Positions 1,314-55,145 of a stretch of DNA of 64,000 bases are shown piece after piece; the stretch's first letter is position 1; every line of letters begins with the position of its first letter. The DNA is from Mantamonas sphyraenae STR306 (Eukaryota; Protista; CRuMs), in NCBI GenBank assembly GCA_026936335.1, contig JAPMXV010000044.1, positions 124,001 through 188,000 of the forward strand. The letters are read 5' to 3'. The notes beneath the pieces are model-generated. The model was not told where the DNA came from. It did no database searches and was given only the letters and a program-made list of their open reading frames with translations. The position numbers were made by a program, and so were the translations under genes.

Positions 1314-2627
1314 ATGCATACATTGGTTTGGCTGTGTGCTGTGGCTACCTTTCTGATGAACGGCACCCGTGCTCTGATGAGTACGGCTGTAATTCCGCTC
1401 GCGGCGGAACTGAACATGGACCCCGAGGCACAGGCTGCCGTGCTGTCATCCTTCTTCTGGGGATACCTGTTTACTCAGGTGCCTGGCGGATGGCTGGCTG
1501 CCCGGTATTCCCCCGAGGCTGTGTATGCCGTCTCCGTCGCTCTGTTTAGTCTGTTCACCCTGCTCACCCCTGTTCTCGCGTACATGGACACGGTGGGACA
1601 CGGATGGCTGTACATGGCCCGTGTTATAGTGGGTCTCTCCCAGGGTGTGTTCTATCCTGTGCAGAATCAACTGGTCGCCAAGTGGGTTGCTGTGCACGAA
1701 CGATCCACCGCTCTCGGCTTCCTCGGCGCGGCTGCTTCCAGCGCCATCCTGTTTATCATGGCCCTTTTTGGTCCCATGGACGCAGCCATGGGGTGGCACG
1801 GCCCATTCGTGTTGCTTGGAGCGTGTGGGTTGGCCTGGATGGCTGCCTGGCGTGCAGTGACAGCCGCGACCACGCCCGAAGGCCGTCCGGGTCTTGCGGA
1901 CGAGGAGCAAATGGCACTGATTGGAAACGGGGCTGATAACCATGCCAAGGACCAAGCGTCGGATGTGGTGGCCTTCCCGTGGTCCCGCGTGTGGTCTGAG
2001 CCAGCGTTGCGGTGTATTCCTGTGAACCACTTTTGCCTGAACTGGGGTGGCTTTGTGCTGTTCTCGTGGATGCCAACGTACCTACACGACGCCTTGGGAG
2101 TGCACAAGGACATGGTGGGTGTGTACACCGCCGTGCCCTACCTCTGCTCCTTTGTGAGCGTCTATGGAGCGGGCCGGCTTGCAGATCGACTGGTGTCCCA
2201 TCAGCATTGGTCTCTGCTTCGAGTGCGTCGTGTGATGAATGGCGTAGGCATGGCCACCCCGGTGGTCTTTCTGTTCCTTGCAAGCGTGTGCACAGGGGCA
2301 GCAAGCGTAACTGCTTGCATCTCTGTGGCTCTGGCTGCGTCTGTGTGCACTGTGGCAGGATACGAAGCCAACATGCTGGATGTGGCACCTCATCACGCCG
2401 GTCTTCTCATGGGGTTGTCGCAAACGGTCGGTGCTGTGCCGGGCATCGTCGGAGTGGGCTCGGTGGCCACGCTCGTCCAATGGGCAGGCGACTGGTCTCT
2501 TGTGTTTTACGTCACAGCGGCCATGTATGCAATCGGAGGCCTGTATTTCCATGCCAACGTGTCCACCTCGGTGCTGATCGATGCCCCTGCGCCGTCGCAA
2601 CCAGCAGCAGTCGACGCAGCCGAATGA
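1314..2627 (+). CDS. MFS anion:cation symporter, SLC17/sialin-like; intronless
   Basis: About 12 hydrophobic segments; SLC17 motifs LSSFFWGYLFTQVPGGWLA, GLSQGVFYP, KW..HERS, NWG...SWMPTYL, LDVAPHHAGLLMG; first in-frame ATG at 1314. Confidence 0.9.
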   Translation: MHTLVWLCAVATFLMNGTRALMSTAVIPLAAELNMDPEAQAAVLSSFFWGYLFTQVPGGWLAARYSPEAVYAVSVALFSLFTLLTPVLAYMDTVGHGWLYMARVIVGLSQGVFYPVQNQLVAKWVAVHERSTALGFLGAAASSAILFIMALFGPMDAAMGWHGPFVLLGACGLAWMAAWRAVTAATTPEGRPGLADEEQMALIGNGADNHAKDQASDVVAFPWSRVWSEPALRCIPVNHFCLNWGGFVLFSWMPTYLHDALGVHKDMVGVYTAVPYLCSFVSVYGAGRLADRLVSHQHWSLLRVRRVMNGVGMATPVVFLFLASVCTGAASVTACISVALAASVCTVAGYEANMLDVAPHHAGLLMGLSQTVGAVPGIVGVGSVATLVQWAGDWSLVFYVTAAMYAIGGLYFHANVSTSVLIDAPAPSQPAAVDAAE

Positions 2628-3684
2628 AAGACGACGTGCCTGACGTCAACACAGCTTTGGCGTTGGGCTTTTTCGCCACGGCCTGCTTCACACTCCAATA
2701 CCTGCCGCAGGCCATCTTGAATTGCCGCCGTCAGAGCATCAGCGGCTTCAGCACCCTGGGCATCATCATCAAGCATGTCGGCGCGTCCTTCCTGCTGGTC
2801 AACACATATCTGATCAACGGTGAGTTGCGTGCTCAAAGAGCGACCGCATGCACATACATCTGGACTGGAGTGGCACGTGTGCAAGGTGCGTGTGAACGTC
2901 CAGCGACGACTGACTCGACTTTTCTCTTTGTGCGCACGCGAAAAATCCCGCAGAGCCCGTGCCGGTTGTTCTGTACGGCCTCTTCAATGTCTTGCAGCAC
3001 AGCATGTTCATGGTTCAGTTCACCGTGTATGAGTCGGACACCACCTTTCTCAAGTGGTTGCTGTTCCCGCTGCTGCCGCTGTTCCTTGGCCAGTATGCGC
3101 CGTGGACCCTCTGTGAGTTTCGGGGTGGGAAACGGTCCGGGAGAAACAACGCGCGTCGGCTGACACCCTGGCCTGTACTGCTTGCGCACAGATTATACAA
3201 ACTTTGTCAAGCCTCTCGCACAGGTGTTTAGCCACTTTCCTCAGCTCTACGTGTGCTACCAGACCAAATCGACCCAGGGCTGCTCCAAAATGACGCAGCA
3301 TCTGAACCTGCTTGGAGGCATGGCTGGCCTGTACAGTACGTGCCCAGGCCCGCGCTTGTCCCAGCCAAAACCGTGCACATGAAGACTGACGCACACACAC
3401 ACACTCACACACACACACACACACACATCCACATCCACTCCACAGTGTGCTACATTATTCCGCCATACACAAACACAACGTACCTGATTTACATCAACAG
3501 CTGCTTCCAGGCCATCTCGCTGTACATAATGGCCTACCTGTACGACGGTTACCCGTTTGCTGACACGTCGGCACTGATCATGGAGAAGGTGGGTGCGGCC
3601 AAAGGCCATGCTCCGTCTGGAAAGGAAGGCAAAGAAGGCAAACCCGCGGGCAAGGGCAAACGCTTGTTGGTTGCGGATGTGTGA
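2624..3684 (+). CDS. PQ-loop repeat membrane transporter (cystinosin/PQLC-like), 4 exons
   Basis: Exons 2624-2819, 2954-3112, 3192-3335, 3446-3684 join in frame through GTGAGT/GTGAGT/GTACGT..CAG introns; two PQ motifs (LQYLPQAILN, FSHFPQLYVC); ATG overlaps the SLC17 stop. Confidence 0.85.
3392..3427. repeat. Interrupted (CA)n microsatellite in intron 3 of the PQ-loop gene
   Basis: Visible cacacacacacactcacacacac... run. Confidence 0.9.
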
Positions 3685-38757: not shown

Positions 38758-39838
38758 ATGGACGTGGAGACCGAGACAGCGAGGAAGAGCAGTCGCACGT
38801 CGCGGAAACGCAAGGCAGAGTACGAAGAAGAGGTGGAGGCGGATGTGGTGGACGAAGTGGACCTACAGGTGGGGGAGCGGGTGGTGACGGATCTTCGGGG
38901 CAACCGCATGGGTCAGGACAATGTACAGAACAACGGCAAAGGGAAACATGCCGGCAACGAGGATGCAGACAACGACGATGAAGAGGAGGATGAGGAGGAT
39001 GAGGATGAGGATGAGGAGGAAGAGGAGGACGACGGGCGGTAGGTTGCAGCGGAAGGCGCGCTTTGCAGAGACCGGGAAATGGAGCTGACACGCAGTGGGA
39101 TTGAAACAAATGGGCGGGGCGTGCATGGGTGCGTGCCCGGGTTACACACTCACATCTGGGATTGGGCTCATGACAGACCGGTGTTTAAGTTTCGCAACTA
39201 CGAGCCGCGAAACGAGGACGCGATTCGGTTTGAGCTGATTCCTCCACCGACTCAGCCGGATCTGCTCGTGGACCCATCGTTGGAGAAAACCCTGCACGCA
39301 GCACCAGGAGAAACCAAGTTTACGAGCTTTGTGGCTGCCAATGAGAGCAGCAAAACGGGCGCCGAGCTGCTTGAAGAGGCCGAGGTAGGGCGCGGGCATG
39401 TGGTGACGTGTTGAGAGACGGGTGCAGGGAGGGACAGGCGGGATGATGGGTTGCGCTGACACCAATGGTGCCTATGTTTTGTACACCGTTCGCAACACGC
39501 GTGCACACACAACTGACCACACTGAAACGCACGCACAGGGGGACAGCCTGCTGGATCTTGCGCCCAAGAAGGCAAACTGGGACCTGAAGCGGGATGTGGC
39601 GAAGAAGATGGACGTGCTGGAGAAAAGGACAAAGCGGGCCATGGTGGAGCTTCTGCGCATGAAGCTGGCAGACGAGGCAAGCAGCGACGAGGACGACAGC
39701 AGCGACGATGAGGAGAGCGACGAGGAGGAGGAAGAGGTTGAGGCCAGCCAGCAGGCAGTCGAGTCTGGCAACGCACTGGCACGGGCAGTCATGGCACGGG
39801 AGCTGGGAGACGAAGGAAATGAAGAGGATCTGGTTTGA
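38758..39838 (+). CDS. CCDC12: Cwf18/CCDC12 splicing factor, 3 exons
   Basis: Exons 38758-39038, 39177-39384, 39539-39838; KFRNYEP and LAPKKANWDLKRDVAKKMDVLEKRTKRAMVEL. Confidence 0.9.
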
Positions 39839-39884
39839 TGGATGATGAAGCCCGCGATGTCGCAGCCACCTTTTCAATTTTCAG

Positions 39885-42114: not shown

Positions 42115-43202
42115 TCATCCTCGATTCAACGCCTTTGTCAACACTCCTTCCTTCACCTTGGACTGCACGTATTCCAGCAGGCGGTTGCTGCCACAAAAAA
42201 CCCATCCTTGACCTCCCGCGTCGTGCATGGCCAGCACACGGTGCTGCACCTGGCCCGAGTTGTCCCGAAACGTCACCACAAACTGTCCCGGATGCCGCAC
42301 GGGCGACGTACGAATAAGAAAGGCGCCTGCTGGCTGGTGATTGAATAGCGGGGCAACTTCTCCGCTGCCCTTGGCCCCGTGAAACCACGGCGTGTCCACG
42401 ACCTCTTCCGCCTCCCGAAAGATGTTTCCGTCCTCTAGTTTCACAAACAGCGACACAAAGGCCATCCACCTCATCACCGTCACTGCATCTTGCTTTAGCA
42501 TCCAGCCGTCCTTGCTCATGGTTGTCACCTCGCTCACGCTCTCGTCCACTAGGAACTCCTTGCACTTCAGCACTGTTTCCACCGGGACATCCATCGTCGT
42601 GCAGACGCTGGCCACAAAGTAGCACCATGGAACGATCACCATGGCCATCCCGTCGTCCTGTGCGGTAGGCAACACACGCAGAGAGAAACAGTGAATGTGT
42701 GTGAGTGGGTTGTCTCTCTGTGAGATTGTGTGTTCGAGCCGCCTGCTCATCTGCATCCCACGTGTGGACATCGCGCATCCCAACTTCATCCAAATCGACT
42801 TACCCGTCCATAGGCAAACTCGGAGCACCAGAACTCCGATGCCTCTTGGTCGACGGTCTTGACCTGTTCCGCTGAACACAACGCCCCCGACGGTTGCGAC
42901 ATCGCCTGCCAGTCACTCTTGTACTTTGCCAGCATGTCCATGTGAGACACTGACCACTCCTCCTCTTTCTCTGTCCACTTGTCATCCTCCTCCGCCTTGC
43001 AAAGGTCCTCATCCCCCAGCCGCTTGCTGTATGCCAACGACCTCCAGTCGGCGGTGTTGCTGAAATGGTGCTCCAGGAAGCCGTACAGAGACGAAAACAG
43101 CTGGTTGGACATCTCCAGCTTCAGCTGCGATGACGACATATCCTCATTCCACAGATTCTCCATTTTCACAATCAGCTGCGGTGGTGCCATGGATGATTTC
43201 AT
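42115..43202 (-). CDS. SH2 protein B: Cbl/SHK-like EF-hand-like segment plus SH2; may be the 3' half of one gene with the next feature
   Basis: Exons 43202-42804 and 42657-42115; ASEFWCSEF..VPWCYF..VTVMRWMAFVSLF then PWFHG..PAGAFLIRTS..PGQFVVTF..VQHRVL. Confidence 0.75.
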
Positions 43203-49847: not shown

Positions 49848-49922
49848 GTTCGATGCAGGGGGTTTCACTGCGTGCGTCGGCGCAAGAAGACCAAACCTCG
49901 GGCACACACATTCCACCCCCTC

Positions 49923-52235
49923 ATGACGGCTTCACTCGTTGGTCGACAGCACGTGAGTGAGCTGACAAGGAAGCTGGTGCAGTGCAACACGCTGCATGTG
50001 AAGCTGACGTCGTTGTTTGGGAGTCAAACGTACAAGAGGCAGCGGCAAGAACTTGCGTGTGTGGGAGAGGCGGTGGCGAAGCTGCAGACCGCTCTCCAGA
50101 CCCATCTTCAGGAGACATTCAAGCGCAAGCGCAAGGGAGAGCTCGTTGAATCGTTGCGCAACCACAGCAGCAGCTCGTTGTCGAGCCTTGGCAGCGAGGA
50201 GAGCGGTGAGAAGGATGGCGGAAGTCGGAGCAGCAGAAGCAGCAGCAGCAGCAGCAGCAGCCACCACGACGGCGATGCAGGAGAGGGATCGCATGGCTCT
50301 GGGATGGACAGCGGAAGCCTGGATGTGCGAAAGAGGCTGGTGCTGGACATGGTCGGGTTGCTGCTGCCGCTTGTAAACCAGACGCGGACGCTGCTGTCGA
50401 ACCTGGTCGACGCAAAGAGCAACGACAGCTTTGAGTACGCATACACGGACGAAATGCACGAGTTGCGTGTGTTGCGGCAAAAGATGCAGCTTTGCCTGCC
50501 ATACGTGGCGATGGAGGACTTGGTGTTTCCCGACACGTATCTCACGCCCGATTGCGAGGAGTGCAGTCCGTTTGTGCACGTGAAGTACGTGGACAGCAAG
50601 GCCAAGGCGCAATATGACGCGCTCATGCACCTCATCAACGTGACCAACGTGTTTATGGACGGCAAGAGCGGATTCTTTGGGTCGCTGAGTTCGCTGTTTA
50701 GCCCGCAGAAAGCAGCTGTGCGCAGCGACGATGTACAGCTGAACGGGAACGTGCACAAGTTCAAGCGCGTGTGGAATCTCCTGGAGACTGGATCTGTGCG
50801 CACTTTTCAGAACATTGCCATGCCCAAGGTAGGCACGAACCAGATGTTCAGGCTGTTTGAATCGGGCAACATCGACGAACAGCAGGAACAGGACATGCAG
50901 AAACGTCACAGCGTGAAGGCGCGGTTGTTGTATCCGCACGACATCGAGTACCTGCAGGACAAGGTGAGCCAGCAGTCACAGAGGCAGCGGGAGATTGCCC
51001 GGCGCACAGGCAGCAGCGCAGGCGTACAGGAGAAAGACGAAAGCGATGATGGAGTTGTGCTGATGATCAAAGACGATGGAAGCAATGCCTGCAGCACAAA
51101 AGAGGCCATTCACGTGTCCACGGTGATTCTGCACCTGCACGGCGGCGGGTTTGTGGCCATGAGCTCGTTCTCGCATCAAGTGTACACACGTCAGTGGGCT
51201 CTGGACAACGACACTGCCATTGTGTCTGTGGACTACCGCTTGGCACCCGAGGACCCGTTTCCGGCTGGATACCTCGATTGCATGATGATTTATCGTTGGA
51301 TGGTCACGCACGGCCTGGAGCAGCTGGGACTGACGTTTGACCACCTCATCATCACGGGCGACAGCGCAGGCGGCTGTTTTGCGTGCACAGTCACGCTGAC
51401 GGCTTTGGCAGAAGGGCTCAAGGCGCCAGACTATGTGATGCTGAGTTACCCGGCAACATGTGTGGACGACCAGTACTTTCTGCCCTCGAAGCACAGGCAC
51501 ATGGAAGACAAACTCCTGTCGCTGCCGCTTGTGAAGACGGTGTTTTCATCATATGTGCCGGACAAGGAGAGCACTCTGGCAGAATGGGAGCCGTGGCAAG
51601 TAAGCCCGCTGTTTGCGCCGCAGGAACTGCTGGAGCGCTTCCCACGCACTGTCATTCACGTGGGAGACCTGGATCCTTTGCGTGACGATGCGTTGTACTT
51701 TGCACATGCCCTGTACAACGCCGGACGGCCTGTGCGTGTGCGTGTGTACGAAAACCTGGCGCATGGCTACCTAAACATGCAGGACGCGGTGAAGGACAGT
51801 GCACGTGCGTTTGATGACGTGCGAGCGTGGCTTAGGGTCATTGTAGACACGGATTGCAGGGCAGATGTGGCCCACGTGCTGGCAGCTACGCAGGAGAACT
51901 TGAAAGAGGCCATTGATCTTGCCCAGAAAAGCATCCTGGGGCGCATGGTGGCTCGGAAGCAAAATGCGCTCAACGCAGACGACTCTTTCGTGGACGTGGA
52001 GCTGGAGGAGGAGGATGGCGACACGGTGGAGATTGTTCTCGACGACACAGACCGGGAGGCGGCTATCTTTGGCGGACCTGCTGTGATGGCCCACGTGGAC
52101 GAGGAAGGCCACCCTGAGGACTTTGGCGATGTCGGTGACGAGGAGGACAAGTTGGTCGTGGCTGAGCTGGAGAACAGCGTGCGGTTGCTGGAGGCCGAAA
52201 GCGGCGGGGGATCAAAATTAAACGCAGCCCAATGA
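49923..52235 (+). CDS. Hormone-sensitive lipase family esterase; intronless
   Basis: HLHGGGFV, SHQVYTRQWA, SVDYRLAPEDPFP, GDSAGG, DPLRDD, HGYLN; VWNLLET segment typical of eukaryotic HSL. Confidence 0.92.
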   Translation: MTASLVGRQHVSELTRKLVQCNTLHVKLTSLFGSQTYKRQRQELACVGEAVAKLQTALQTHLQETFKRKRKGELVESLRNHSSSSLSSLGSEESGEKDGGSRSSRSSSSSSSSHHDGDAGEGSHGSGMDSGSLDVRKRLVLDMVGLLLPLVNQTRTLLSNLVDAKSNDSFEYAYTDEMHELRVLRQKMQLCLPYVAMEDLVFPDTYLTPDCEECSPFVHVKYVDSKAKAQYDALMHLINVTNVFMDGKSGFFGSLSSLFSPQKAAVRSDDVQLNGNVHKFKRVWNLLETGSVRTFQNIAMPKVGTNQMFRLFESGNIDEQQEQDMQKRHSVKARLLYPHDIEYLQDKVSQQSQRQREIARRTGSSAGVQEKDESDDGVVLMIKDDGSNACSTKEAIHVSTVILHLHGGGFVAMSSFSHQVYTRQWALDNDTAIVSVDYRLAPEDPFPAGYLDCMMIYRWMVTHGLEQLGLTFDHLIITGDSAGGCFACTVTLTALAEGLKAPDYVMLSYPATCVDDQYFLPSKHRHMEDKLLSLPLVKTVFSSYVPDKESTLAEWEPWQVSPLFAPQELLERFPRTVIHVGDLDPLRDDALYFAHALYNAGRPVRVRVYENLAHGYLNMQDAVKDSARAFDDVRAWLRVIVDTDCRADVAHVLAATQENLKEAIDLAQKSILGRMVARKQNALNADDSFVDVELEEEDGDTVEIVLDDTDREAAIFGGPAVMAHVDEEGHPEDFGDVGDEEDKLVVAELENSVRLLEAESGGGSKLNAAQ

Positions 52236-53146
52236 CCGACCACACTGTTTCCCTCGACACAGGAATCGATATGCACTACCTCGAGTATAACGGGGATGTC
52301 CATTCGGACGTTGTCACGATCGTCTGTCTGCACGGCCGTGCGCAAACGGCTCACAGTTGGGACGATTTTGCACCCGCTGCTGAAGCTGAAGGGTACAGGG
52401 TCCTCTGTTTGGATTTGCGAGGTCACGGCGATTCCTCTTGGCCCAAAGACGGGGAATATGCTCTGAATTGGCTTGCAGAAGACCTGCGCTCATTTGTGGA
52501 GCTGGTTGTGGGTGAAGGCCGGTTTGTACTTGTCGGCATGTCCCTGGGTGGCCTGACGATGATGCGCTTCCTTGTGGACCTGGTGGAACAGGACAACACA
52601 GAGGTATTGCATCGAATCCCACGCGTTGTGAGCGTGGACATCACCCCGTTTGAAAACAAGGAGTTTGCAAAAGACAAATCGTCGTCGTCTTCTTCGTCGT
52701 CGTCGTCGTCGTCGTCCTTCACGGCCCAGCTGATGCGGGATACCTTTGAGGAGTGGGTCGAGGCTGCACACGAGTTTAATCCGAAGCGTAGCAAGGATGA
52801 CCTGCGCTCTCGGCTCCAGTACTCGCTGCGGGAGACGGACGACGGGAAGTGGACGTGGAAGTATGACGCCGTGTCGCTTCTGGACCCTGAGAAGCAGCGA
52901 GAGCGGAGCACAAAGTACGGTGAAGAGCTTTGGACAGCTCTCAAGGACGCCTCTGCTTCGCTGCCACCCGTGTTGCTTGTTCGTGGGGGCAAGAGCACGT
53001 ACACAAACGACGAGCTCGCAGCACGCTTCTTGGAGACTCTGCAAGATGCCAGTGATGTGTGCATCGAAGAAGCAGGCCACAGTGTGGCTGGTGATTGCCC
53101 CGAAGAGTTCAACTTGGCAGTGTTGAGCTGGTTGCAGAAGATTTGA
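52232..53146 (+). CDS. Alpha/beta-fold hydrolase (Abhydrolase_1/6); intronless
   Basis: LHGRAQTAHSW, DLRGHGDS, nucleophile GMSLGG, LLVRGGKS, AGHSV; ATG overlaps the HSL stop. Confidence 0.9.
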   Translation: MTDHTVSLDTGIDMHYLEYNGDVHSDVVTIVCLHGRAQTAHSWDDFAPAAEAEGYRVLCLDLRGHGDSSWPKDGEYALNWLAEDLRSFVELVVGEGRFVLVGMSLGGLTMMRFLVDLVEQDNTEVLHRIPRVVSVDITPFENKEFAKDKSSSSSSSSSSSSSFTAQLMRDTFEEWVEAAHEFNPKRSKDDLRSRLQYSLRETDDGKWTWKYDAVSLLDPEKQRERSTKYGEELWTALKDASASLPPVLLVRGGKSTYTNDELAARFLETLQDASDVCIEEAGHSVAGDCPEEFNLAVLSWLQKI

Positions 53147-53218
53147 GTGACAATTGCCGCAACTTCCGGCCTTCATTGGGTGTTGACAACGGAATCAAAC
53201 ATGTCCCTCATTCCACAC

Positions 53219-55145
53219 TCACATGTTGCTAGGCTGAGTGCCCTGAGCGAACCACTTCTTGAGGTCAAACTCAATGTAGGAGTTGCAGGCGGCCGGGCGC
53301 CACTGGTCGAGGTGGCCGTTCTCCCACGCACTCCAGGCAATCTGGTTACCTGGTTGGAAGGCAACACTGAGGACGTTGGATCCGTCGGTGTTGTCGGTGC
53401 AGGTGAACTGATGGTGACCCTTGTCGCCAAGCACAGAGGTGATGTTGATCGCCTCCAGGCCTGCAATGGCCACGTTGTTCTGCTCGTACCACTGGAAGGC
53501 ATCGTGGGCCATCATGTAGCGAGCAAACGACCATGAGTTGGGCGACTGGCTCCACTCGTAGTGCTTGCGGATGGTCGGGTCGTAGCCGTGGTTCGTGCGC
53601 CACACGGCGTTCTTCAGCGGGAAGCCGATCTGCACCGTGTTGCCTGCCTTGTCGGTGTAGGTGGCGTTGGCCTCGCGAGCGTCGTTGTCGTTGAAGTATG
53701 CGGTGTAGTCGTACATGGTCTCCATCGCCACCGCGCCGGGCTTGCCCACAGACGCGTCCTGGGCGCTCGTCACCATGTGGTTGAACCCAACCGTGTTGTT
53801 GGTCGACTCCCACACTGTACGCGCCTGGTCCAGAGTGTAGGCGTTCTCCATGACATAGCGGAGACGCAACACCCACGGGAAGCCGTCAAAGGTGATTTCG
53901 TTCTCCTCCAGGTTGGCCTCGTGCACAGACACTCCTTCGGAACTCATGCCAGCCAGAGAGCCCCACAGACCCAGGAATCCAAACGTGGCGTGCGAGATAG
54001 CACCGTCGTTCGGGCGGAACACAGTCACCACCTTGTACTTTGCAATGCCCGTGTCCTTTGTCCAGTCCAGGTTGCGCCCACTGAACAGCTGGCCACCCTG
54101 CGTACGCTCGCTGCTCCACACGCCAAACATGGAGCACTGGGCGCCGGTAATCATCGGCTTGGATTTCTCCACCAGCGGCTTCAGCACGTCCGTCACAGTC
54201 GTGTCGTTCCACTCACTGTGTGTCCGCATGCGTGGCGAGTGTTTGTGTGTGCACGTTTGCAAGAGTGTGCGCGCAAGTGTCCGTGCGTTGAGCATGCGTG
54301 TGAGCGGAGGTTTGTCCACGCGTTCAATTTCCGGCGGCGTTCCTGACCAAAGAGAGCGACGCTTTTTCGGCACTGCACGCCGTCGGTGGAGCGGAATTGC
54401 GGCCGGGAAATGACAGGAGAAGGGAAAGAGGGCGAATGGATGCAATGGACGCCCGCGACGCTCTCAACTCACCGCAGAAGAATCAGAATAAAGTCCTGGA
54501 GATCGCCGGGAGCGTTGGCGAGGAGCACAATGCGCGTGACGTAGCGGTACATGTCGGGCACGCCGGCATCAACGCCACCCTGGCGCATACCTGCAGGAGG
54601 TGAGACGATGACAGGGGCACAGTCGCAGCAAAGGCACACGTCGTGGTGAGCGTACGGGCCGTGTGGTGTGCGGTGGAGGGGAAAGAACGGGGTTTGGCAC
54701 AAACGAGCGGGCATTGAAACACACCTTCCAGCTCCTGCTTCATGCTCAGAGGCACCTGCACGCTCAGATACTTGTCCCACTGGTGGTCGATGACCTTTTC
54801 GAGAGCGTCGAGGACAAAGGGTTCGTACCACTTGTCGCCCAGGAGGGACTTGAAGAAGGTCTGGTACATGTCCTCGGCAATCTTGGCAGACAGGATGCCT
54901 GCGTCGTAGCCCATCTGGTGACGCGAGCCGGTGAGGTCCAGCACATACACAGGGTCGACATACGCGCGGTGCGGCAGCTCCACAGCGTACAGAGCGCTGC
55001 CTGCGCTCGAGTTGATCTTGGCAAAGCCCGTGGGCGTCTGCACCGTGAAAGAAGGCGTGAACGGATCCGTGGACGCCTCGTGTTCCAGCGCATGCACACA
55101 GCACACAATAAGCGCCACAGTGGCAATCAGCGTGGCGGATTTCAT
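53219..55145 (-). CDS. Secreted Ntn-hydrolase, peptidase C45 / acid-ceramidase-like, 3 exons
   Basis: Exons 55145-54725, 54590-54473, 54215-53219; signal peptide; autocleavage-site Cys in QCSMFGVW, GRNLDW, GMSSEGV, RTNH. Confidence 0.85.

Follow-up and report, generated by a model that had tools for sequence, protein, structure and literature searches.

A stop/start overlap between two alpha/beta-hydrolase genes of Mantamonas sphyraenae lies within a probable gene-end motif

Two genes of the CRuMs flagellate Mantamonas sphyraenae, one similar to hormone-sensitive lipase (HSL) and the other esterase-like, overlap by the four letters ATGA, which hold the stop codon of the first and the start codon of the second. 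Operon-like translational coupling of the two genes is not supported. The overlap lies in a motif, AATGA(A), that is probably a gene-end signal in dual use with the TGA stop, as in Giardia. We argue for separate HSL-like and esterase mRNAs that have one AAUGA in common, and we give this explanation about an even chance of being right. If it is true, bacterial-looking ATGA junctions in a free-living, deep-branching eukaryote are explained by a gene-end signal that carries a start codon. It would also extend the protist poly(A) signals by one new hexamer, from a lineage near the root of Amorphea. Our literature search found no published 3'-end signal for CRuMs and no paper on gene overlap, operons or poly(A) signals in Mantamonas.

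Two genes with a four-letter overlap

The window is the whole stretch of 64,000 nucleotides that was analysed. The features at this junction are listed with their basis.

49903..49903, + strand: 5' end of the HSL-like mRNA, 20 nt ahead of the ATG (start of an X3 contig)
49923..52235, + strand: HSL-like gene, 770 codons from the first ATG (ORF, translation, Pfam)
51126..51773, + strand: Abhydrolase_3 catalytic domain of the HSL-like gene (aa 402-617, E 2e-47)
52128..52229, + strand: segment absent from RNA contigs (contig tables, k=31 arithmetic)
52210..52229, + strand: A-rich stretch with rare codons in the HSL frame (coding score, 5'-flank k-mers, start contexts)
52231..52236, + strand: AATGAC, a copy of AATGA(A) and putative poly(A) signal, holding the HSL stop and the esterase start (sequence, motif statistics)
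52232..52235, + strand: ATGA stop/start overlap (sequence and ORF list)
52232..53146, + strand: alpha/beta-hydrolase (esterase-like) gene, 304 codons (Pfam, alignment, RNA contig)

The overlap is real, and both ORFs are complete genes of different alpha/beta-hydrolase families. Positions 52230-52235 read CAATGA, with CAA at 52230-52232, TGA at 52233-52235 and ATG at 52232-52234. The ORF list gives 49872..52235 (+) and 52232..53146 (+). The first-pass annotation had reported the same HSL end and esterase ATG, and its coordinates hold. In two Illumina DNA runs (X1 and X2) a single contig spans 50278-53900 with zero mismatched letters or indels relative to the window, which excludes a frameshift or other assembly error.

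The HSL-like protein has an N-terminal part of 400 aa with no Pfam match, followed by the catalytic domain and an acidic tail. The HGGG, GDSAG, DPLRD and HGY motifs can be read in its translation, the acid and His motifs included, and together with Abhydrolase_3 they place it in the hormone-sensitive lipase family (esterase family IV). Its homologues carry the name hormone-sensitive lipase. The metazoan HSL N-terminal domain PF06350 is not among the Pfam matches of the protein, so HSL-like is the safer name. The X3 contig that marks the start of its mRNA begins at 49903, immediately after 22 letters of Illumina adaptor. At the other end of the gene the coding score of the HSL frame is positive to ~52190 and negative from ~52194. 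The final ~10 codons are 5'-flank-like rather than coding-like, and the stretch at 52210-52229 is similar in k-mers and start contexts to the A/CA-rich 5' flanks of other genes.

The esterase matches Abhydrolase_1 (2.7e-22) and Abhydrolase_6 (8.1e-21), and its best solved relative is 3p2m/6wym, a 'possible hydrolase'. In a full-length alignment S104 in GMSLGG, the nucleophile elbow Ser, and the C-terminal H283 are invariant. A Ser run is inserted at aa 150-163. The homologues are free-standing proteins of ~277 aa with query coverage of 96-100%, and the bacterial ones align from residue 2-5. They are aligned from their own N-termini, which rules out a fusion protein. Residues 2-13 of the esterase match the N-terminal strand of these homologues, including a common D-H-x-V. 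The next Met is codon 14. Read back from 52232, the frame reaches a stop ~70 nt upstream with no other ATG on the way. These points make the overlapping ATG the best choice of esterase start, as had been proposed before. No match of the exact esterase sequence to public assemblies is on record.

The earlier reading of both products as alpha/beta-hydrolase folds is borne out by the Pfam matches. Its further proposal of sequential lipolysis is not. The two belong to different families (Abhydrolase_3 versus Abhydrolase_1/6), and the nearest relatives of the esterase are bacterial esterases of unknown substrate.

The AATGA(A) motif at gene ends

Motif statistics were taken from 89 rough ORF calls in one 258-kb stretch (C44:1-258000) that includes the window. 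AATGA occurs from 2 nt before to 60 nt after the stop in 31 of these 89 genes, compared with 3/89 in each of two controls, the last 63 nt of the CDS and +61..+123. AATGAA is found near 18-20 stops against 0-1 in the controls, and AATGAC, the form at our junction, near 4/89 against 0. The broader pattern A[AG]TGA is near the stops of 44/89 genes but only 5/89 in controls (Fisher p 2e-11). AATAAA has a single occurrence near the gene ends. The TGA stop itself is embedded in AATGA in 11/70 TGA genes, where codon use predicts 4% (p 1e-4); embedded AGTGA does not exceed its codon-use expectation (p 0.21).

Most genes that end in this way are not followed by a co-directional gene. There is a convergent neighbour for 11/20 ORFs with an ATGA end, and A[AG]TGA lies on the stop in 15/54 genes with a convergent neighbour. 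This implies that the motif belongs to gene ends. Two further sites in the window illustrate the two situations.

53207..53212, - strand: AATGAG of the convergent neighbour gene, whose stop is at 53219-53221 (sequence, contig depths)
2623..2628, + strand: AATGAA holding the stop of an SLC17-like gene and the ATG of a PQ-loop gene; together these form the window's second genuine pair (ORF pairs, motif)

At the first of these, high-depth RNA of the neighbour gene extends no further than 53206, 1 nt past AATGAG, with depths of 298 and 208 on the right and 30 on the left; this is the single 3' end in the RNA contigs, and it abuts adaptor, with no A run seen. AATGA(A) contains ATG, so an abutting co-directional gene can start within the motif. 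This is also seen when the motif is past the stop: at C44:8790 the ATG of the next gene is the one within the AATGAA of the upstream gene, 12 nt past its stop.

In the mechanism that we propose, two separate, complete genes abut with zero spacer. The genome of M. sphyraenae is 25.06 Mb in 78 contigs and ~86% genic (gene density: PMC10492846). The core of AAUGAC supplies the shared letters, and AAUGA(A), which sits on stops or at most a few tens of nt after them, is most likely a poly(A) or 3'-end signal in dual use with UGA. When a co-directional neighbour is pushed onto the gene end, the AUG inside the motif could become its start codon; left unused, that AUG would be a harmful upstream AUG. 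A single hexamer would then do the work of a stop, a gene-end signal and a start. Most likely the esterase would have an mRNA to itself, whose very short leader starts just before the end of the HSL frame, and ribosomes fresh from finishing HSL would not be the ones to translate it. We infer in this way a poly(A) role for the motif, a cut site for the HSL mRNA and a transcription start of the esterase's own.

The -4 overlaps can also be counted. Among 81 co-directional ORF neighbour pairs in C44:1-258000, four have a first-ATG distance of -4. Two are genuine separate genes (52232-52235, and 2624-2627 in the window) and two are unspliced-intron artefacts. Spacers of 0-50 nt occur in about 13 pairs, which sets the expectation for any single position at ~0.26; the two genuine cases give a Poisson P(2 or more) of 0.03, a mild local excess for 258 kb. 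It must be noted for annotation that ATGA overlaps here have three sources: genes that truly abut, gene ends that no gene follows, and unspliced introns. The first-pass annotation had taken the ATGA pairs as the sign of a genome-wide mechanism. A widespread feature does exist, in the form of the AATGA(A) gene-end motif across 258 kb, but operon-like coupling is not supported.

The sites at 2623..2628 and 52231..52236 have the same 8 letters, ACGCAGCC, just upstream, and they are the sole such sites genome-wide. With only these two window sites in 25 Mb, ACGCAGCC-N-AATGA was rejected as a general junction motif; a shorter form has 11 sites versus 2 for the reversed control, near chance. A start-codon preference for A at +4 was rejected too, being absent (~28% of 60 starts).

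RNA contigs and competing explanations

The RNA evidence consists of unstranded contigs, whose ends are not true RNA ends and which cannot prove single molecules. Their depth is 83 and 110 over the HSL-like gene and 30 over the esterase, a 3.7-fold drop between the ORFs. The esterase contig runs from 52230 to 53235 and starts 2 nt ahead of the ATG. No adaptor-abutted 5' end is reported at 52230 in the RNA contigs, unlike at 49903. The 93 nt at 52137-52229 are missing from every RNA contig, and 52128-52136 are found solely in a 69-letter contig of depth 42. It consists of 39 collinear letters and exactly k-1 = 30 more, which are listed neither as a loose end nor as a joint. Arithmetic with k=31 suggests in-frame RNA junctions 52136|52230 and 52127|52230. 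It also suggests that some HSL-derived RNA, joined to 52230-52259, continues into the esterase ORF for 28 nt or more.

A canonical intron was considered for this gap, but the GTGACG..GCAG candidate (52135-52227, 93 nt) is 2 nt off the contig coordinates 52136/52230. Neither GC-AG nor AT-AC introns fit the coordinates. Addition of poly(A) at 52127 or 52136 is unlikely, as it would leave no stop codon and there is no AATGA upstream; adaptor-type hubs also left 13-22 spare letters, not 30. The one intron that was checked in the stretch is canonical, GTGAGT..ACTAAC..CAG.

One can imagine a bicistronic mRNA on which ribosomes end HSL at the UGA and restart at the overlapping AUG. The overlap itself fits this scenario, as does a -4 count slightly over expectation. 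The inferred junction contig (depth 42) would connect the body of HSL with the opening 30 nt of the esterase ORF at a depth similar to the 30 of the esterase contig, and a separate esterase 5' end is not documented in the RNA contigs. However, eukaryotic reinitiation after long ORFs requires special elements, and here the upstream ORF is 770 codons. A UGGGA-type core is absent from the 160 nt upstream of either genuine ATGA pair. The fold around the junction is not significant (z -0.3), no inverted repeat was found there, and a search of Rfam matched no family to it. The depth drop between the ORFs also argues against one message, no ORF follows downstream of most ATGA gene ends, and an ATGA within a gene-end motif predicts cleavage just inside the esterase ORF. 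We consider reinitiation unlikely. The translational coupling implied by the earlier annotation finds no support either, given that AATGA(A) overlaps TGA with or without a following gene, that RNA depth differs between the ORFs and that collinear RNA is missing. A reading we rate as quite unlikely is unusual RNA processing, in which an in-frame piece of 93 or 102 nt is removed from the HSL tail (from 52137 or 52128 to 52229) with non-GT-AG ends, and this sets how much RNA reaches the shared AAUGA and the esterase ORF. It would explain why 52137-52229 has no RNA contig between flanks at depth 110 and 30, why the 69-letter contig has 30 extra letters, and why 52230 is exactly where the following contig begins. 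The two inferred deletions each have a length divisible by 3 and would leave HSL ending in CAA-TGA. Against this, the extra 30 letters were never seen directly and holes in contig cover are no proof. The ends would be GA..CC, at odds with the checked intron, and no significant structure or repeat links them. If true it is the most surprising part of these data, with contig arithmetic as its one basis.

The motif may also have nothing to do with polyadenylation. AATGA(A) near stops could be a translation-termination context or a source of back-up stops; the overlap would then have arisen simply through deletion pressure and involve no common signal. The RNA contigs contain no poly(A) junction, and the stop itself partly inflates NNTGA patterns, as the embedded AGTGA indicates. 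Yet AATGA is enriched off the stop as well (20 matches at +2..+60 versus 3 in controls), A is favoured directly after TGA (31/54), AATAAA is missing, and the RNA of the neighbour gene stops right past its AATGAG. We regard the termination reading as improbable. It is hardly credible that the whole arrangement is an artefact, be it an assembly error, a wrongly placed esterase start, or a single gene that is fused or frameshifted. Half of the nearby apparent ATGA overlaps are intron artefacts, but no GT..AG pair connects these two frames, the assembly agrees with both DNA runs, and the esterase homologues are free-standing. None of 73 HSL homologue matches is fused to this esterase; one weak match, P0073 (490 aa), also carries Abhydrolase_1/6. 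The separate-mRNA reading with one common AAUGA is the one we prefer. Its most ambitious version makes AAUGA(A) the main poly(A) signal and, in triple use as stop, 3'-end signal and next start, the element that allows spacerless nuclear genes. It adds a non-GT-AG in-frame excision of 93/102 nt that joins the HSL frame to this element and would point to a previously undescribed processing step. We offer that version tentatively and think it somewhat doubtful.

Comparison with known systems

Viral stop-start sites are comparable in that restarting at an AUG that overlaps a stop is in principle open to a eukaryotic ribosome. Such termination-reinitiation is found in caliciviruses, in influenza B M1/BM2 and in some fungal viruses, and it depends on pairing between 18S rRNA and an element further upstream. 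No such element is evident at the HSL-like/esterase pair, and the upstream ORF there is far longer. Overlapping transcripts are also a feature of the compact genomes of microsporidia and nucleomorphs. The likeness is that gene ends and starts are pushed together, with the downstream transcript starting inside the upstream gene. To our knowledge a shared stop, start and 3'-end hexamer has not been described in these groups.

The closest parallel to the preferred reading is the dual-use stop codon and poly(A) signal of Giardia lamblia (WGURAA), Naegleria gruberi and Trichomonas (PMC11529991; PMC9014877). In these systems too there is a short hexamer near or on the stop, with very short 3' UTRs. 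The share of overlaps is comparable, 7-18% in Giardia versus the 11/70 TGA genes with AATGA in Mantamonas. The hexamer differs, being AAUGA(A) instead of AGURAA or AAUAAA, and it includes AUG, which makes a start for the next gene possible. Mantamonas lies outside the dual-use survey, and the poly(A) role that is known in Giardia is a predicted one here.

Prokaryotic ATGA/TGATG coupling (PMC10666635) has the same four-letter geometry between co-directional genes. There, however, the genes are on one mRNA and -4 is a dominant class, whereas in Mantamonas RNA depth is unequal, collinear RNA is missing and -4 accounts for ~2 of ~80 ORF pairs.

The overlap and the genes that share it

The stop codon of a lipase-like gene (HSL-like) and the start codon of an alpha/beta-hydrolase gene (the esterase) share sequence within ATGA. 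The features are:

49872..52235 (+), open reading frame of the HSL-like gene, with its first ATG at 49923 and CAA-TGA as its last codons in the ORF listing
52232..53146 (+), esterase reading frame, whose start ATG overlaps the HSL-like TGA stop
52230-52235 (+), c-a-A-T-G-A in the window sequence

The overlap is confirmed. The first-pass annotation had proposed it, and both the HSL-like TGA (52233-52235) and the esterase ATG (52232-52234) are read directly from the sequence. An assembly frameshift is out, since two DNA runs are identical to the region letter for letter. That the overlap is an artefact is extremely improbable.

The upstream product carries an Abhydrolase_3 domain (Pfam, aa 402-617, E 2e-47) and its translation shows HGGG, GDSAG, DPLRD and HGY motifs. 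Its relatives bear the names hormone-sensitive lipase or acetyl esterase. The metazoan HSL N-domain is missing from it, and we therefore prefer the more cautious label HSL-like. The esterase itself is a complete enzyme of the Abhydrolase_1/6 type. Its top homologues are about 277 aa long, come from bacteria and metagenomes, and align at 35-42% identity over 96-100% of the length. Ser104 (GMSLGG) and His283 are invariant across the alignment. The choice of the overlapping ATG as the esterase start was sound because residues 2-13 align with the homologues' N-terminal strand, starting at the next Met (codon 14) would remove that strand, and there is no other in-frame ATG upstream of 52232. The two products had also been called related. 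Both are indeed serine hydrolases sharing a fold; their families differ, however, and nothing tested here gave a pathway link between them.

The esterase has a 14-Ser insertion that its relatives do not, and no close eukaryotic relative is among the matches listed. Its nearest relatives are bacterial or metagenomic, and on sequence grounds it may stem from an old gene transfer. Its codon score is typical of this genome.

The genome spans 25.06 Mb in 78 primary contigs at 59.19% GC (PMC10492846), and the window is at about 59%. It holds 9,416 genes, mostly mono-exonic, with a mean of 2,282 bp (PMC10492846); from these two figures we compute a genic share of about 86%. Packing around the pair is extreme. 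The HSL-like gene and a Ser-rich gene on the minus strand diverge with just 75 nt between their ATGs (49923 and 49847, respectively), and the HSL-like mRNA has its 5' end at 49903, which leaves very little room for the promoter region they share. On the other side, 72 nt separate the convergent stops (53146 and 53219).

AATGA at gene ends

We examined the window together with 200 kb of adjoining sequence (258 kb, C44:1-258000 in coordinates of the whole contig, where the window is 124001-188000), calling ORFs by codon-usage score and keeping the 89 most confident. The leading k-mers after their stops are AATGAA (21-fold), GAATGA, AAATGA and ATGAAT. AATGA lies between stop-2 and +60 in 31 of the 89 genes, against 3 in the final 63 nt of the CDS, 3 at +61..+123 and 7 in 5' flanks. 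For AATGAA the counts are 18-20 against 0-1 in controls, and AATAAA is seen once. The stop itself is embedded in AATGA in 11 of 70 TGA genes, against a share of only 4% for NAA among all codons (p 1e-4); AGTGA on the stop shows no excess over the codon-use expectation. ATGA ends 20 ORFs; for 11 of these the neighbouring gene is convergent and no coding sequence follows the ATG. Stop-borne AATGA is therefore a property of gene ends. The HSL-like stop reads cAATGAc, and that of an SLC17-like gene, which overlaps a PQ-loop gene at window 2624-2627 (+), reads gAATGAAa (2623-2628). The esterase's convergent neighbour (-) has AATGAG nine nt past its stop, and high-depth RNA ends one nt beyond this hexamer.

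AATGA(A) is thus a candidate poly(A) signal of Mantamonas, judged by its sequence distribution. It fits the pattern of stop/poly(A) signals in "dual use" known from Giardia (WGURAA), Naegleria and Trichomonas (PMC11529991). Neither Mantamonas nor AAUGAA appears in that survey, and we found no paper on AATGA(A) as a Mantamonas signal.

A second way for start codon and gene-end motif to coincide is seen at C44:8777-8805 (-). There the ATG within the preceding gene's AATGAA, 12 nt past its stop, opens a gene of 783 codons (C44:8790).

RNA over the pair and competing explanations

The published data comprise paired-end, mate-pair and PacBio DNA plus one poly(A)-selected TruSeq RNA library (PMC10492846). 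Our RNA evidence is contigs from four runs of one study. One run, X3, seen as k=31 contigs, behaves as an RNA library. It is without the 74-nt intron (GTGAGT..ACTAAC..CAG) of the minus-strand gene upstream, its depth shifts per gene (101; 83 and 110; 30; 208 and 298), and TruSeq adaptor abuts fixed ends, including 49903, 20 nt before the HSL-like ATG.

In X3 the HSL-like body contig ends at 52127, and a 69-letter contig of depth 42 covers 52098-52136 plus 30 extra letters. X3 contigs leave 52137-52229 uncovered, and the esterase contig (depth 30) begins right at 52230 with no spare letters. These three records account fully for the depth table. Thirty spare letters equal k-1 in a 31-mer graph, adaptor-bound ends leaving 13-22 instead, and they are assigned to no loose end or joint. 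All three boundaries would follow most simply from a graph bubble of two arms, with putative RNA junctions at 52136|52230 and 52127|52230. Such junctions would remove 93 or 102 nt, each a multiple of three, and the HSL-like frame would still end CAA-TGA. The excised piece would have GA..CC ends; a canonical GT..AG candidate of equal length sits 2 nt to the left and does not fit the coordinates. No fold or repeat pairing the ends was found. The piece scores well as HSL-frame coding up to about 52190, and a putative in-frame excision within such sequence is unexplained.

Judging by the X3 contigs, most RNA from the pair does not appear to be a plain collinear bicistronic mRNA. The operon-like coupling read into the overlap by the first-pass annotation is not supported: AATGA marks gene ends, no RNA contig runs collinearly from one gene into the other, and depth differs 3.7-fold between the genes. 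We argue that the pair is better explained as a variant of the known dual-use arrangement, here extended to the start codon, on the strength of sequence statistics over 258 kb and the contigs of one RNA library, with one RNA feature left over.

The most likely mechanism, to which we give about even chances, is that the spacer was lost and AAUGAC serves as stop, 3'-end signal and esterase start, with the esterase on its own transcript. The stop does lie in AATGAC; every further step we infer. Deletion pressure would have removed the spacer, and the HSL frame would now run through what appears to be the A-rich 5' flank of the esterase (HSL-frame codon score is negative from about 52194). The HSL-like gene would stop at the UGA of AAUGAC, also its own 3'-end signal, and the AUG within would start the esterase, an arrangement that keeps its very short leader free of any earlier AUG. 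If cleavage follows the example of the neighbour gene, the HSL-like mRNA would be cut one or two nt past the hexamer and would therefore lack the esterase coding sequence. The esterase's own transcript would begin just before 52232, where an AAUGAC so near a 5' end is presumably ignored as a signal.

One can instead imagine termination-reinitiation on a read-through RNA. The putative junction contig would enter the esterase ORF by at least 28 nt with about the depth of that ORF, and the X3 contigs show no 5' end at 52230. However, the upstream ORF is 770 codons long, no reinitiation element is recognisable in upstream sequence, fold or Rfam, and RNA depth drops from the HSL-like gene to the esterase. 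We consider this unlikely, and slightly less likely still that the odd RNA excision plays a role. A function of the motif other than poly(A) signalling is improbable.

A 121-nt X3 contig (53206-53326) has adaptor at both ends, with Read-1 adaptor after 53326, and overlaps the minus-strand gene's last 108 nt and 13-nt 3' UTR. It has no Rfam match; it may represent a separate small RNA, or transcripts whose ends happen to coincide.

Frequency of ATGA overlaps

Four of 81 co-directional ORF neighbour pairs in the 258 kb have a first-ATG distance of -4, and two are genuine: HSL-like/esterase and SLC17-like/PQ-loop. About 13 pairs have spacers of 0-50 nt, so about 0.26 would be expected at any single position, and at least two has P = 0.03. 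Start codons show no overall bias towards a following A (about 28%).

The other two pairs are artefacts. One, at C44:52184, arises from an intron (GTATGT..ACTGAC..CAG) that joins both frames into one protein, and the spliced product (C44:52100-52190, outside the window) reads ..RLLQ-YTPKVVDMTSLED... At window 42786-42789 the ATGA between EF-hand-like and SH2 ORFs (42786-42805, minus strand) follows a GGTAAGT donor by 15 nt, so the two probably belong to a single gene as exons. Going by this sample, a sizeable share of the apparent ATGA overlaps in this genome would be intron artefacts. A TGATG (-1) candidate also lies at window 39836-39840, between two co-directional ORFs amid tightly spaced genes; its downstream start is uncertain, the next ATG being 266 nt later.

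Both genuine pairs have ACGCAGCC-N-AATGA in common (window 2614-2627 and 52222-52235), and it occurs nowhere else in the 25 Mb genome. Because of this, their upstream proteins end Ala-Ala-Gln or Ala-Ala-Glu with identical codons. The shared sequence may be a coincidence or a small shared element.
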